Shown in pieces: positions 1 to 6,795 of a DNA stretch of 64,000 nt. Every line of letters starts with the position of its first letter. Positions within the stretch are counted from its first letter, which is position 1. Below the pieces are notes generated by a model, which saw only the letters and a list, made by a program, of their open reading frames with translations, was not told the DNA's origin and made no database searches. Location: positions 124,001 to 188,000 of IMG/VR virus record IMGVR_UViG_3300042923_000569; one strand, given 5' to 3'. A program made the translations under genes and the position numbers.

Positions 1-328
1 GATAAGGTTCTAAGTTATTTCGAACGTGAAGTAGAGCTTCCGACCATTGTAATAGACTTCCGATTTCAAATAAAAGTACTTGTGGCTGAATACCACGCTT
101 GCATTTAAAATCAAACATCCAAATCTCACCACAGTCAAGATTGTAAAAATCAATTGGGTTAGATTGGAAAATTGTTTTCTTTAAAGGACCAACTTCAAAA
201 GCGTCATATCGATCAGTAAGTCGTGCTACGACTTTATGTAATTCTTCGGAGCTTGGCTCACACGCAAATTTTACACGATATGAATATTCTGGAGTAAGGT
301 CGGTTAATATTTTTTGTAATTTATTCAT
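1..328 (-). CDS. hypothetical protein, probably virion-associated (partial, runs off window start)
   Basis: Manual translation from ATG at 328: MNKLQKILTDLTPEYSYRVKFACEP..., open to position 1; lies in the structural cluster. Confidence 0.7.
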   Translation of the reverse strand, partial: MNKLQKILTDLTPEYSYRVKFACEPSSEELHKVVARLTDRYDAFEVGPLKKTIFQSNPIDFYNLDCGEIWMFDFKCKRGIQPQVLLFEIGSLLQWSEALLHVRNNLEPY

Positions 329-355
329 GTTAACTCCGAGTCACAGTAATTTAAT

Positions 356-919
356 TTATTTATTACGTTTCATTGATGCAAGTAGCTCGTTGCGGGATTT
401 TACTGCCACAACCTTCTCACCTTCAATTGCGTTCGGGTCTGTTCCACCTAATGATACTGGTGTTTTGGATTTTTGATTTAATTCGATTTCCATTTTGTCT
501 TTTTTAATCTGCATATCAATTAACTTAATATCAGAATCGATTACTTTTGAATGTGCGTCTAAGGCAATCTTAAGCATAGCATTTGCAGCATTAATCATTT
601 CTGATGCAAATCTGTCTTCGCAATTAAAAGCACGGTCAAAAATATCTTCAAATTTATCTTCTGCCATTTTAGCCAAACGGTCTAAATGTGATTTACGACT
701 TGTAATATCAGGAATGTCTTTCAACTGTTCACGATATTCTTTCAGTTGTTGCATTGAACGTCTAGCTTTATCAACATCAACACCTGATATTTCAGTACTT
801 TCATCTTCGTCATCATCTGAATATAAGTCGTTCTCGTCATAGTCTTCACCAAGTAGTTTCTGTATATCTTCAGTACTAGCTAGACCTAGTGCTTCTTCAA
901 CACCACGTTTTACTTTCAT
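356..919 (-). CDS. hypothetical helical protein, possibly terminase small subunit (gp16-like)
   Basis: 187 aa; acidic N-terminus, helical core and C-terminal KSRNELLASM loosely resemble T4-like gp16; weak. Confidence 0.35.
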   Translation of the reverse strand: MKVKRGVEEALGLASTEDIQKLLGEDYDENDLYSDDDEDESTEISGVDVDKARRSMQQLKEYREQLKDIPDITSRKSHLDRLAKMAEDKFEDIFDRAFNCEDRFASEMINAANAMLKIALDAHSKVIDSDIKLIDMQIKKDKMEIELNQKSKTPVSLGGTDPNAIEGEKVVAVKSRNELLASMKRNK

Positions 920-920
920 A

Positions 921-1379
921 TTAGTTCTTCCTATATAATGATTTTTCAGTAATTATTTTAAACTCAATGTTATTTTGCTGACATATCGCCATCGCTGCTG
1001 ACCATTTTGCTTGATTAACAAGTACTGTGATCTTGTCCTTTCTGGATTTAGCAAACTGCATATAACATTGCTTTTCAGGTTTAATTTCTAATAGCTGAAT
1101 TTTTTCTGAACCAGATGCTGGGTCAATGTATTTAACTAAAAAATCAGGCCAGTAATTTTTAATCTTACCCTCCACAGGGCAAGTATATTGTATTGGAAAC
1201 GGTTCAACTGACCATTCCAGTACTGTAGGGTTCATATCAAGTGCAACCATAACATCCTTTTCCCACGAACTTCTATAAATTGGTGGATTTGATGATTGGT
1301 ATTTTTTGATATTCTGTATTGAATACACACCCTGTGCTTGTTTCGTATTCTTTATTTTTGCTGGGTTAAACTTCTGCAT
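921..1379 (-). CDS. head completion nuclease, T4 gp4-like (TnsA-type endonuclease fold)
   Basis: YRSSWE...[10 protein letters not shown]...YWPDF...EIKP...NQAKW motifs typical of gp4. Confidence 0.82.
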
Positions 1380-4067: not shown

Positions 4068-4075
4068 TATTTATA
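4068..4075 (-). promoter_or_regulatory. T4-type late promoter TATAAATA
   Basis: Exact match upstream of the tube gene; the TAAATA core also precedes the sheath (~6843), neck (8670), 3254, i-spanin, ferritin-like, 38953 and Ig genes. Confidence 0.75.
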
Positions 4076-4109
4076 AACTTTCGAAGCTTGTCCGTGCATT
4101 AGTACAAAT

Positions 4110-4139
4110 AAAAAAAAAGGAGCCAATAGGCTCCTTTTT
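4110..4139 (-). terminator. intrinsic terminator after the sheath gene
   Basis: AGGAGCC-UAUU-GGCUCCU plus U-tract. Confidence 0.85.
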
Positions 4140-4140
4140 A

Positions 4141-6795
4141 TTATGAAGTTAAACTGTTTTCCAAACGGATTGGAATATAGATGAAGTTGATTGAACGAGT
4201 CGGAACAAGTGCAATATCCATCCACAATTCATTTGCGTCGATACGAGAAGTTGTGTTATTTGATTCATCACAAACTACTAGGAAGTCATAAAGACCATTT
4301 AGTTGAACAATTTCAGCTAGGAAGTTGTTAACAACTGAAGTGAACTCTTGACGAGTACTTGCTGTGTTCAAACGGAATAAGAACGGTTCAGCAAGAATTG
4401 CTAGTTGAGTACGGATGTATACAACAAGACGAGCAACGTTAACACGACTTAATGCAGAACTATCATCAGCAGCTAGTGTTTTATCACCATATACTAGAAG
4501 TCCACGGTTAGGACGCATTGCAATTGGGTTAATCTTGTTAACGTACATAGTGTCACGTTGACCTTGATTATATACTACTGGAGCATATTCACTTTCGTCA
4601 TTAATGTAACCTACAGATGCCGCATTTGTTACAACACCACGTTGTGTACCTGCTGGTGGATACCAAACATAACTTACGCTATCGCTATAAGCATATGTAC
4701 GCATCGCTACAGTACTACCAGGAACTGCAACTTCAGAACCATCAACGTTTGTACCTAAACACCATCCCATATACTGTGCCGCATATGAATAAGCAGTAGT
4801 ACGACCTACATCACCATTACTTGCAGCGTTGTTAGCATTGGTCGCCCAAGCTTGAACATCTGTAGCATTTGGTGCTAAACGTGCAGGAACATCAGTTACG
4901 ATGAAAGCAGTTTCTTTACGATCAGTATTAAGGGTAACTAGTTCGTCAAGTAGTTCAACATATCCAGGAGCACTCATTAGGTTGAATTGGATACTTTCAG
5001 CACGAATATCTTCGTTACTTACTACAACAGATGCTAGAGCTTCAACGATAATTTGACGTTGTGCTGCACGACCGAATAGGCCAGAACCATCTAGAGCTAC
5101 ACCACTTGCAACAGTCCAAACACCATCTTTCATCACTTTAACAACACCTTCAGTTGAACCCAAGTCCACTGCAAGCATTCCATTTTGATATAGTTCTGCA
5201 CTTGGAACATCACCAGTAGTGAAGTCTTCAAAGATTAGACCATTTAGTGTACTTTGGTCAGTACTATCAAGCTTAGTCCAAACACCACCTACGTTACGAT
5301 AGAATACATAACCATCGATGCCTTGTGATAGTGGTTGTACCCAAAAATCACGGTCAGCAGCAGGTTCATCTAACTGAACATACATGTTAGTTGTTGGGTC
5401 GATTAGATCCCAAGTTTCAGTAGAAACGTTAGCAACATATAATTTCACATCTAGTGAATCAGAGTTACTGAAGTTATACCAGTAAGTACCATTAGCTGCT
5501 TTAGCAGTTGGTGTACTTGAATCGACACGTAAATTTGCAACATTAACTAATGAATAGTTGCTGCTATCTACGGTTAGTTTTGCTAGTTCAACAGAACTAA
5601 AAATTTGTTGTCCAGAAGCAAGTGTTTTAAAACTGTAACCATTTTTATTAGTAACGATTAAAGAGTTAGTACCTGTAAAGGTAAATCCTGCGTTAATTAG
5701 GTCTGAACTTTTGTTAAGGTTAGTAATTAAAGATGCAACGTTAACAATCTCACCAGATTTAACTGCAACAACAGTTACTGATTTATTTAAGTACTTGATA
5801 GTTAGTGAACCATCAGCAGTAGCTACTGTACCAGCAGACTGACCAATTGGTGTTGCACCAGCACTGATTGCTGCGTCAGAACCAGACTGACGATAAAGTG
5901 AGAAGCTTTTGCTATCTTCATCAAATAGAGCACCGAAATATGTGTTACCGAAAGTACCAGATTTAGCTTCAATTTCATAGAAACTATTACCTGTCCAAAC
6001 ATTTACTTCAGTCCATACGGAAGTTAGTGAAGCGAAACGTTTTAGAACAAAGCGAGTACCAAAATAGGTAGAACCATTTTTAGTATAACCATCACGAATC
6101 CAAACATTACCTGCTTCGATTGTAGAACCGGTTGGAACTTTGTTGATTGGTGATAGATAAGTTTCAACTTGAACTAGACCAACTGCTTCGTATTTGTACA
6201 TAAGCATTTGACCAGTACTTGGAATATGACGTAGTACTAGGTCGTCTACATTTAATCCAGTGGTGATAACATCTTCAATTCTTTCGTTACTTACGATTGT
6301 TACTGGTTTAACAGCCCAATCATAGAAACTTGTTGGGTTTGCAATCTTAGCAACATATGCTTCGATTTGCGTTGCACTTGTGTCTAACCACAATGTACCG
6401 TTAGACACTGGACCAGTTGGCTCAGTTCCTGATGGTGCAAGTTGTGCTAGATCGATATCTGCACGAACAACGTATGCACGGTTTGCAATACCCATATAGC
6501 TATATAGAGCATGTAAACCATATTCGTTAAGTTCGTCGCCTTGAACTACAGAACCATTACTTGATTGAAATATTGGTGATCCGTAAGTTTCAAGAGCATT
6601 TCTTTGAGATGTAATAAGTTTAAGTGTACCTGCGTTAGCTTTAGTAGTACCGGTAGCAACTGAAGTGCTTCCAGTTACAAGCTTGTCTTGTGCAGTTGCT
6701 ATGAAAAACAAAGGCACGGTTCCGTTAGCACTTGTAGCACTAATAGTTTCATCGGTAACTGTTACACTAACACCAGGTGATTGTAAATCAGCCAT
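4141..6795 (-). CDS. tail sheath protein (gp18-like)
   Basis: 884 aa; N-terminal LQSPGVSVTVTDE; C-terminal WYPPAGTQRG, YGDKTL, LSRVNVARL, FLVVCDESNNT, INFIYIP motifs. Confidence 0.93.
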   Translation of the reverse strand: MADLQSPGVSVTVTDETISATSANGTVPLFFIATAQDKLVTGSTSVATGTTKANAGTLKLITSQRNALETYGSPIFQSSNGSVVQGDELNEYGLHALYSYMGIANRAYVVRADIDLAQLAPSGTEPTGPVSNGTLWLDTSATQIEAYVAKIANPTSFYDWAVKPVTIVSNERIEDVITTGLNVDDLVLRHIPSTGQMLMYKYEAVGLVQVETYLSPINKVPTGSTIEAGNVWIRDGYTKNGSTYFGTRFVLKRFASLTSVWTEVNVWTGNSFYEIEAKSGTFGNTYFGALFDEDSKSFSLYRQSGSDAAISAGATPIGQSAGTVATADGSLTIKYLNKSVTVVAVKSGEIVNVASLITNLNKSSDLINAGFTFTGTNSLIVTNKNGYSFKTLASGQQIFSSVELAKLTVDSSNYSLVNVANLRVDSSTPTAKAANGTYWYNFSNSDSLDVKLYVANVSTETWDLIDPTTNMYVQLDEPAADRDFWVQPLSQGIDGYVFYRNVGGVWTKLDSTDQSTLNGLIFEDFTTGDVPSAELYQNGMLAVDLGSTEGVVKVMKDGVWTVASGVALDGSGLFGRAAQRQIIVEALASVVVSNEDIRAESIQFNLMSAPGYVELLDELVTLNTDRKETAFIVTDVPARLAPNATDVQAWATNANNAASNGDVGRTTAYSYAAQYMGWCLGTNVDGSEVAVPGSTVAMRTYAYSDSVSYVWYPPAGTQRGVVTNAASVGYINDESEYAPVVYNQGQRDTMYVNKINPIAMRPNRGLLVYGDKTLAADDSSALSRVNVARLVVYIRTQLAILAEPFLFRLNTASTRQEFTSVVNNFLAEIVQLNGLYDFLVVCDESNNTTSRIDANELWMDIALVPTRSINFIYIPIRLENSLTS

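Follow-up and report, generated by a model that had tools for sequence, protein, structure and literature searches.

Short words kept in a genome far above expectation and read by a dedicated protein are well known in bacteria and hardly known in phages, for which the textbook rule is avoidance of short palindromes. Here, we describe the hexamer AGTACT in a stretch of 64,000 nucleotides (the window; window positions are meant unless the genome is named), which comprises bases 124,001 to 188,000 of the 357,873-bp IMG/VR virus record IMGVR_UViG_3300042923_000569, a genome with direct terminal repeats. AGTACT is the ScaI site (AGT^ACT) and belongs to the very sequence class, the 6-bp palindromes, in which phages avoid restriction sites; however, the sign is opposite here, with 991 copies genome-wide against ~110 expected, a ~9-fold excess. 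Excepted from palindrome avoidance, AGTACT recurs at operator positions of early promoters. We suggest, tentatively and at a little less than an even chance, that AGTACT is the selected binding word of a dimeric, probably phage-encoded DNA-binding factor and serves both as early-promoter operator and as genome-wide self-mark.

Among bacterial words, Chi, the FtsK-orienting polar sequences (KOPS), the DNA uptake and uptake signal sequences (DUS/USS), matS and the SlmA-binding sites (SBS) resemble AGTACT in being short, far above compositional expectation and present in all frames of coding DNA. In these words, as in AGTACT, density is kept while single sites turn over, and self DNA is the denser, for AGTACT by 32-fold relative to Escherichia coli. 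However, the bacterial words belong to cells, and most of them are asymmetric and have strand polarity (Chi, KOPS and DUS), whereas AGTACT is a perfect palindrome of a phage clade. The likeness to Chi and KOPS drawn in the initial annotation, which was made from the sequence alone, thus holds for over-representation but not for polarity, since a palindrome cannot be polar; for the packaging or recombination role that it also considered, no evidence pointing there was found. The nearest sequence match is the SlmA site of E. coli, GTGAGTACTCAC, the central six bases of which are identical to AGTACT; both words are palindromic, dispersed and mostly intragenic. By contrast, there are ~50 SBS per 4.6 Mb but ~1000 AGTACT per 358 kb, AGTACT is without the outer GT/AC and the position-3 purine required by SlmA, and SBS are explicitly not found at fixed core-promoter positions, as AGTACT is (PMC3020112).

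The closest match to the mode of action proposed here is found in SPO1 TF1 and phi29 p6, in which a preference for phage DNA, sites at early promoters, and a genome-wide and a promoter role are united in one factor. Both are abundant DNA-binding proteins of phages, which cover the phage's own genome and turn early promoters off; TF1 recognizes DNA containing 5-hydroxymethyluracil (hmU), and p6 recognizes DNA shape. Unlike in these systems, the discriminator here would be a sequence word present ~1000 times in an unmodified genome, and no HU-like gene was found in it. A third precedent is formed by P1 cre, Mu mom and IS10, methylation-sensitive promoters with Dam GATC sites. These share with the present case a short palindrome at fixed −10/−35 positions, and a phage-encoded Dam-family enzyme is present here as well; however, GATC is not enriched several-fold genome-wide in these cases.

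Enrichment and symmetry of AGTACT

The window contains 161 copies of AGTACT, while 100 dinucleotide-preserving shuffles gave 18.9 ± 4.5 copies and at most 35. This corresponds to one site per ~400 bp, as compared to one per ~360 bp genome-wide. The initial annotation had listed 17 sites in the first ~6.3 kb (75, 794, 872, 1021, 1219, 1587, 1888, 1994, 2165, 2435, 2633, 4354, 4711, 5260, 5790, 6214 and 6233). All 17 are exact matches, and positions 1 to 6300 hold no further site; its expectation of ~2 sites agrees with the ~1.8 obtained from length-scaled dinucleotide shuffles, and the similar density that it had perceived across the window is borne out by counts of 7 to 13 sites per 4 kb.

AGTACT ranks first among all 4096 hexamers under Markov models of orders 1 to 3, with an observed/expected ratio (O/E) of 8.6 at order 1 and of 2.3 at order 3 (z = 37.6 genome-wide and 15 in the window). 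The observed count is approached by the maximal-order model (M4) alone, because AGTAC and GTACT are themselves inflated by AGTACT. GTAC by itself is enriched just 2.25-fold, TGTACA stands at 0.9-fold, and GGTACC and CGTACG have zero copies; therefore, a bias in GTAC or in dinucleotides is no explanation. Half-matched words (NGTACT) are mildly elevated (1.6- to 2.9-fold), and words with inner mismatches are without clear enrichment.

Several lines of evidence locate the pressure in the DNA rather than in its coding content. First, the 887 coding copies genome-wide exceed those in synonymous-codon shuffles (248 ± 12), in codon-order shuffles (147 ± 11) and in dicodon shuffles (399 ± 14), the last of which preserve protein, codon usage and junction dinucleotides; z-scores of 36 to 65 remain after all shuffles. 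Within the window, 155 coding copies compare with 40.0 ± 5.4 after synonymous shuffling. Second, with genes called by our own greedy longest-open reading frame (ORF) procedure (573 genes, 92% coding), which is crude and may have a few frame assignments wrong, 438 copies are read as AGT-ACT, 311 as nnA-GTA-CTn and 138 as nAG-TAC-Tnn, each frame being three- to fourfold above the synonymous shuffle. Third, the 106 non-coding copies are denser (3.85 per kb) than the coding ones (2.68 per kb). The observation in the initial annotation that sites fall in different reading frames holds genome-wide, and non-coding DNA carries the word too. Fourth, dipeptides are distorted: 54% of Ser-Thr pairs are spelled AGT-ACT (15% expected), and Ser-Thr pairs are themselves too frequent (806 versus 527 expected) while Thr-Ser pairs are not (528); GTA-CTN is the spelling of 424 Val-Leu pairs (169 expected), with A as the preceding base in 73% of them. 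Because the excess withstands shuffling, occupies all frames and distorts dipeptides, the pressure on AGTACT acts at the level of DNA, with a strength sufficient to alter protein sequences.

These data bear on the proposal that AGTACT reflects composition, codon usage or dipeptide content, or that it is a signal at the RNA level. As a coding artifact would have it, this genome makes common use of the codons AGT, ACT and GTA, but the z-scores after shuffling and the enrichment in non-coding DNA speak against it, and codon usage is itself partly a result of AGTACT. The initial annotation had named loss of the enrichment after codon and dipeptide shuffling, or its reduction to a lower-order bias, as grounds for giving up a functional reading; the shuffles leave the excess in place, and an artifact of composition or codon usage is refuted by them. 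As for an RNA signal, 87% of genes lie on one strand, yet the bases flanking AGTACT are reverse-complement symmetric, which argues against a signal in mRNA. Altogether, we regard the artifact and RNA explanations as almost certainly wrong.

The flanks also define the extent of the word. At −1, this genome has A in 37%, C in 31% and G in 6% of sites, and at +1 T in 38%, G in 31% and C in 9%; G at −1 and C at +1 are thus depleted (6 to 9% versus 12% background). In the relatives RaK2 and Sharanji, the word lengthens to TTC-AGTACT-GAA, a 10- to 12-bp palindrome. The best description of the word is HAGTACTD here and yTC-AGTACT-GAr for RaK2 and 121Q-type relatives. Symmetric flanks of this kind would be expected if duplex DNA were read by a two-fold symmetric factor.

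Clade-wide excess amid avoidance of other palindromes

The first 20 kb of the window are ~79% identical at the nucleotide level to Cronobacter phage GAP32 and its kin, which include XbC2, CBB, Serratia phage BF, the Erwinia pEa_SNUABM phages and Yersinia phage fHe-Yen9. This GAP32-like region carries genes for the tail sheath, tail tube, neck, RNA ligase and CCA-adding enzyme, and its tail sheath protein shares 89% identity with the XbC2 (Mimasvirus) counterpart and ~70% with the sheath of the E. coli phage Sharanji (Asteriusvirus). By nucleotide kinship and sheath identities, the source of the window is placed among the jumbo myoviruses of the GAP32/RaK2/121Q type.

The excess of AGTACT is shared by this clade. 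Observed and expected counts are 937 and 79 in the whole genome of RaK2 (Alcyoneusvirus), 903 and 101 in that of Sharanji, and 107 and 14 in a sampled 43 kb of XbC2, and an enrichment of 9- to 12-fold is common to at least four genera. IMG/VR loci from GAP32, CBB, BF, Yen9-04 and uncultured clade members reach 20- to 25-fold in early regions. By contrast, the outgroups, a small sample, are not enriched, neither as whole genomes (PA5oct, 15 observed and 89 expected, i.e., avoidance; CM1, 36 and 81) nor in sampled stretches (XacN1, 0 and 4; Atu_ph07, 2 and 2.5), and a sampled 20-kb stretch of PA5oct that includes the start of the sheath gene has no AGTACT. No mention of AGTACT was found in papers on RaK2, CBB, fEgEco12 and Sharanji or in reviews of jumbo phages.

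Core genes with outgroup homologues still carry 2.16 AGTACT per kb, and the density of 2.2 to 3.0 per kb is alike in core, clade-specific and orphan genes. In codon alignments of orthologues, AGTACT is about twice as conserved as the average hexamer (42% versus 23% at 73% nucleotide identity, and ~20% versus 11% at 63%). Nevertheless, most sites are lineage specific and unshared between genera, and gains about equal losses. What is maintained is density, not positions. These features, together with the clade-wide occurrence, the absence from outgroups, the shuffle-resistant excess in all frames and in non-coding DNA, and the symmetric flanks, support the genome-wide functional mark proposed in the initial annotation.

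Near-equal density in all gene classes including orphans, and inter-site spacing that is close to Poisson (coefficient of variation 0.92) with somewhat fewer very short gaps, would also be expected of a uniform process, and a C5 cytosine methyltransferase is present in the genome. Thus, a neutral mutational or repair drive that turns near-cognates into AGTACT, e.g., by very-short-patch-like correction or biased gene conversion, has to be weighed. We hold such a drive to be improbable. No one-mismatch neighbor is specifically depleted, AGTATT and AATACT having an O/E of 0.8 to 1.1 like other neighbors; a search of the genome with PF03852 found no Vsr homologue, and the C5 enzyme is DNMT3-like and of the CpG type. 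Moreover, the fixed promoter positions, 20-bp phasing and arrays described below need selection, and in three genera the early region is two to three times denser than the remainder.

All AGTACT-rich genera infect Enterobacterales (XbC2 being labeled a Xanthomonas phage), and the AGTACT-poor outgroups infect other orders. The host split parallels the clade split, so that phage clade is confounded with host order. In E. coli K-12, there are 400 AGTACT in 4.64 Mb, i.e., 0.086 per kb as compared to 2.77 per kb in the phage; the density in the phage is 32-fold that of the host, and one phage genome brings in 2.5 times the sites of the host chromosome. Because of the confounding, AGTACT might be read by a host protein common to Enterobacterales, which the phage sites would recruit, titrate or activate. 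The nearest case is the nucleoid-occlusion factor SlmA, which blocks FtsZ only when bound to DNA and the site of which, GTGAGTACTCAC, has AGTACT at its core (positions 4 to 9) (PMC3020112); specific binding of SlmA, or of a factor in host extract, to TTCAGTACTGAA or AAGTACTT DNA would then be expected. Sharanji, in which no known inhibitor of division was found, causes filamentation of E. coli (PMC11895373), which is only a lead. SlmA needs G1, T2, A4, G5 and a purine at position 3, and mutation of G1 T2/A11 C12 strongly impairs binding (PMC3020112). However, GT/AC flanks occur at 4 to 5% of phage half-sites, as by chance, with two to three full SBS-like GTNAGTACTNAC sites per genome, and at −1, where SlmA needs a purine, C is favored (49% in RaK2 and 46% in Sharanji) while G is depleted (6 to 8%) in the three genomes. 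On these flanks, the reading of AGTACT as a SlmA site is rejected. The fixed operator positions in phage early promoters are also not obviously explained by a host protein. We know of no other host factor with an AGTACT site, and a host reader appears distinctly unlikely.

AGTACT stands out further by what surrounds it in the hexamer spectrum. It is the sole strongly enriched 6-bp palindrome, the next being CATATG with 1.8-fold in the window. GCGC has 0 copies against 291 expected in this genome and is also absent from RaK2, Sharanji and XbC2, and GGTACC, CGTACG, AGGCCT, GCATGC, CTGCAG, CAGCTG, CCATGG, GTCGAC and GGTCTC have zero copies in this genome. The clade obeys palindrome avoidance to an extreme, with AGTACT as the one exception. 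Some asymmetric words are also purged (CCCAGT, 1 observed and 79 expected; GACATC, 4 and 158; GAGGAG, 3 and 64). The avoided set is partly genus specific: GGTACC is present in 49 copies in RaK2, and neither RaK2 nor Sharanji avoids CCCAGT.

Early promoters and the search for a proposed reader

AGTACT is densest at 215 to 250 kb of the genome, where the coding DNA of a ~30-kb region of small early-type genes carries ~4 copies per kb and the intergenic DNA still more; a hot region equivalent to this one is present in RaK2 and in Sharanji. A tRNA cluster as the cause of the dense 200- to 250-kb region was rejected, as no tRNA genes were found there. Close AGTACT pairs revealed a family of intergenic sigma70-type promoters on the gene strand at 223 to 236 kb of the genome, of the form AGTACT-TGCnnnnnnnnGCG-AGTACT-t-TATAAT with a Shine-Dalgarno sequence and start codon downstream. 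None of these promoters lies inside the window, and the published promoter tables of CBB are without an AGTACT promoter class.

Three observations describe the architecture of these promoters. First, AGTACT starts 7 bp upstream of the start of TATAAT, with one base between the two, in 15, 17 and 22 cases in three genera (1.6 to 2.8 expected). Among unbiased TTGnnn-N16/17-TATAAT matches, AGTACT occupies −19 to −14 in 10 of 22, 14 of 50 and 18 of 60 cases and, among those of the early region, in 10 of 14, 13 of 24 and 14 of 32, or about half. Second, another AGTACT often shares its last T with the −35 TTGACA and lies 20 bp from the copy adjacent to the −10; the spacer between the copies varies, while both copies, the −35 and the −10 are kept. 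Third, of all distances between pairs, 20 bp alone is enriched in each of the three genomes (11, 19 and 10 pairs versus ~2.5). A palindrome at a fixed core-promoter position and multiple sites in helical phase are both features of operators. No fixed offset of AGTACT to late-type (ATAAATA) or TGAAACG motifs was found. Readings of AGTACTgTATAAT as a LexA box or as an extended −10 (TGn) were rejected on inspection because the register does not fit.

Arrays of three to four sites are present as well. Outside promoters, four copies in exact 20-bp phase form a non-coding array at genome positions 239,076 to 239,141 (19,076 to 19,141 of locus L010), in a ~1.2-kb stretch without a convincing ORF; the stretch ends in an 18-bp perfect palindrome, GGTAACAGTACTGTTACC, that contains the last copy. 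A comparable cluster of non-coding copies is present near 224.7 kb in RaK2. The array could be a regulatory hub or a replication origin. In the early regions of RaK2 and Sharanji, many AGTACT promoters have a conserved G-rich hairpin at ~+10, e.g., caaaggggatacatagtgtatcccc, which suggests a shared 5′ leader structure in early transcripts.

Positions −19 to −14 are where sigma region 3 and extended −10 contacts are made, and a clade-specific, RpoD/RpoS-like sigma factor of 334 aa, in which regions 2 and 3 are recognized, is encoded on the minus strand at genome positions 261,344 to 262,348. AGTACT beside the −10 could, therefore, be an extra promoter element for this sigma factor, the genome-wide excess being separate or a side effect. 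This is quite improbable in our assessment: a single sigma domain cannot read the same palindrome both at −19 to −14 and upstream of the −35, the TG is out of register for an extended −10, the ~900 intragenic copies are not promoters, and the non-coding arrays lack −10 and −35 elements.

A further possibility is that AGTACT is methylated by an orphan DNA methyltransferase encoded by the phage and the methyl mark itself is the signal, acting as an epigenetic switch of early promoters comparable to Dam/GATC and as a mark by which parental or mature phage DNA differs from new DNA or that of the host. A 6-bp palindrome has the shape of a typical Type II methyltransferase site, and AGTACT lies beside the −10, where methylation-sensitive promoters carry GATC. 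The genome also encodes a Dam-family N6-adenine methyltransferase of 182 aa (PF05869, TIGR01712-like; genome positions 206,850 to 207,398), which is kept in the three AGTACT-rich genera compared by whole genome (this genome, RaK2 and Sharanji) and has no match in PA5oct and CM1. To our knowledge, however, characterized members of its family are GATC specific or non-specific. The second methyltransferase, a C5 cytosine enzyme of 287 aa (genome positions 313,967 to 314,830, minus strand), is 66 to 76% identical across genera and absent from PA5oct and CM1. Its best relatives of solved structure are the catalytic domains of mammalian DNMT3B/3C/3A (E ~1e-21), ahead of M.HhaI, and this DNMT3-like sequence fits the CpG methylation reported for RaK2 (PMC3622015) rather than a mark on AGTACT. 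RaK2 DNA has been reported to resist many restriction enzymes (PMC3622015), but DNA of a 121Q-type relative was cut as predicted by ten enzymes, ScaI not among them (PMC13070987). Methyltransferase targets are not normally enriched, so that the 9- to 12-fold excess and the amino acid-level distortion would be left unexplained, and the word of 10 to 12 bp in two genera exceeds the usual methyltransferase site. Methylation is compatible with a reader, yet alone does not explain the enrichment, and we consider it unlikely to be the signal itself. Thus, of the two options named in the initial annotation, a binding site fits better, given the fixed promoter positions, the 20-bp phase and the 10- to 12-bp palindrome, while a modification target, which the clade-specific Dam-family enzyme keeps plausible, does not on its own account for the enrichment.

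Fixed operator-like positions, helical phasing, arrays, a symmetric extent of 8 to 12 bp and restriction to one clade are most simply explained by a dimeric DNA-binding factor, and the genome-wide density together with the 32-fold contrast to the host suggests that phage DNA is where this factor accumulates. From these patterns we infer the binding of a protein, its genetic origin and the effect of the binding. The reader of AGTACT would be a symmetric (dimeric), sequence-specific double-strand-DNA-binding factor particular to this jumbo-myovirus clade and, most likely, phage-encoded. At early sigma70-type promoters, it would occupy the copy at −19 to −14 and, often, a second one abutting the −35, 20 bp or two helical turns away, and the bound dimer or tetramer would govern access of RNA polymerase, most simply to shut off early transcription. 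The ~1000 further copies along the chromosome, at 32-fold host density, would gather the factor on phage DNA, the dispersed copies serving as a sequence-encoded self-mark or scaffold, comparable to hmU for SPO1 TF1 and to general affinity for phi29 p6.

A number of points weigh against a dedicated binding factor. No cognate binding protein for AGTACT was found: this genome shares with RaK2 and Sharanji 110 conserved proteins that have no match in PA5oct and CM1, and Pfam and PHROG scans of 102 of these 110 (those of ≤420 aa) recognized no DNA-binding fold except the sigma factor and gave no conserved helix-turn-helix (HTH), ribbon-helix-helix, HU or TetR candidate. The nucleic acid-related proteins among the 102 are this sigma factor and the two methyltransferases. 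An XRE-type HTH protein of 81 aa (genome positions 262,574 to 262,819), the gene of which lies upstream of the sigma factor gene with a 48-aa ORF between them, was rejected as a clade-wide reader because it has no homologue in RaK2 or Sharanji. The best candidate by guilt by association is a basic protein of 98 aa (g404; genome positions 236,338 to 236,634), which is conserved in the hot region and in several relatives is encoded by gene 2 to 3 at the genome end, but its AlphaFold model is of moderate confidence (pLDDT 69), beta-rich and without a match in the PDB. In addition, ~900 intragenic high-affinity sites would be roadblocks or a sink for a repressor, and it is hard to see which benefit would scale with site number. 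The early promoters form paralogous families, so that their shared architecture is in part common descent. Lastly, promoter occupancy and genome-wide enrichment could have different causes.

Searches of Pfam, PHROG and atlas with the small basic conserved proteins gave no result, and genome searches returned no match to a ScaI-type endonuclease, an N6_N4 or D12 methyltransferase, HU, TetR or Vsr (PF03852). A 106-aa early protein (genome positions 230,622 to 230,942, minus strand), 66 to 70% identical across genera and encoded directly downstream of an AGTACT-doublet promoter, was ruled out as a DNA binder by its strongly acidic composition. This composition recalls DNA-mimic anti-restriction proteins, and the family matches only a PHROG of unknown function.

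Should a reader protein of AGTACT exist, it would offer a handle on the timing of early transcription and on the distinction of self from host DNA in jumbo phages that do not form a nucleus, and would constitute a compact, portable pair of operator and regulator. A broader reading starts from the premise that the clade has neither hypermodified bases nor a phage nucleus. It holds that the clade carries a private palindromic word, in ~1000 copies and at ~30-fold host density, that lets a phage factor tell phage from host DNA by sequence alone; one reader may then time early promoters and act genome-wide in protection, counter-silencing, organization of replicating DNA or a block of division. 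This broader reading is possible but rather doubtful. If true, it would be a viral self-mark encoded in sequence, filling a role that base modification or compartmentalization fills in other large phages.

Sites and genes of the window

The 161 sites of the window extend from 75 to 63,519, and 155 of them lie, in all three frames, within 102 ORFs called wholly inside the window. The tail sheath gene (4141 to 6795, minus strand; 884 aa), so annotated in relatives, is a conserved core gene that bears AGTACT; its six copies, the last six of the first ~6.3 kb (4354, 4711, 5260, 5790, 6214 and 6233), include a pair 19 bp apart (6214 to 6238). Other close groups are a cluster of three (10,770, 10,788 and 10,799; extent 10,770 to 10,804) within a minus-strand ORF and pairs 14 bp (46,871 to 46,890) and 15 bp (57,448 to 57,468) apart. 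By our own ORF calls, the site at 58,232 to 58,237 is intergenic; a further intergenic site (59,507 to 59,512) lies upstream of the one large ORF on the plus strand (59,599 to 60,504), nearly all ORFs of the window being on the minus strand. In practical terms, ScaI and RsaI fragment genomes of the clade far beyond expectation, the density of AGTACT is a simple metagenome signature for clade members, and analyses of codon usage and dipeptides in these phages are confounded by AGTACT.

At 11,467 to 11,664 on the minus strand, a weak HU/IHF-like match (E = 0.027) is broken by four in-frame stops and is probably noise, at most a decayed remnant. A minus-strand cluster (~7800 to 21,000) consists of genes that, by the annotation of relatives, are related to RNA and translation. 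The cluster comprises genes for an RNA ligase, a DUF2828 protein (“RNA-binding protein” in relatives), a CCA-adding enzyme, a Nudix protein, a glutaredoxin, a lysozyme and a ribosome-hibernation (sigma54-modulation/S30EA) protein. Outside this cluster, the genome carries genes for IF3, ClpS, a PNKP-type phosphatase, SIR2, TelA and a ParE-like protein.

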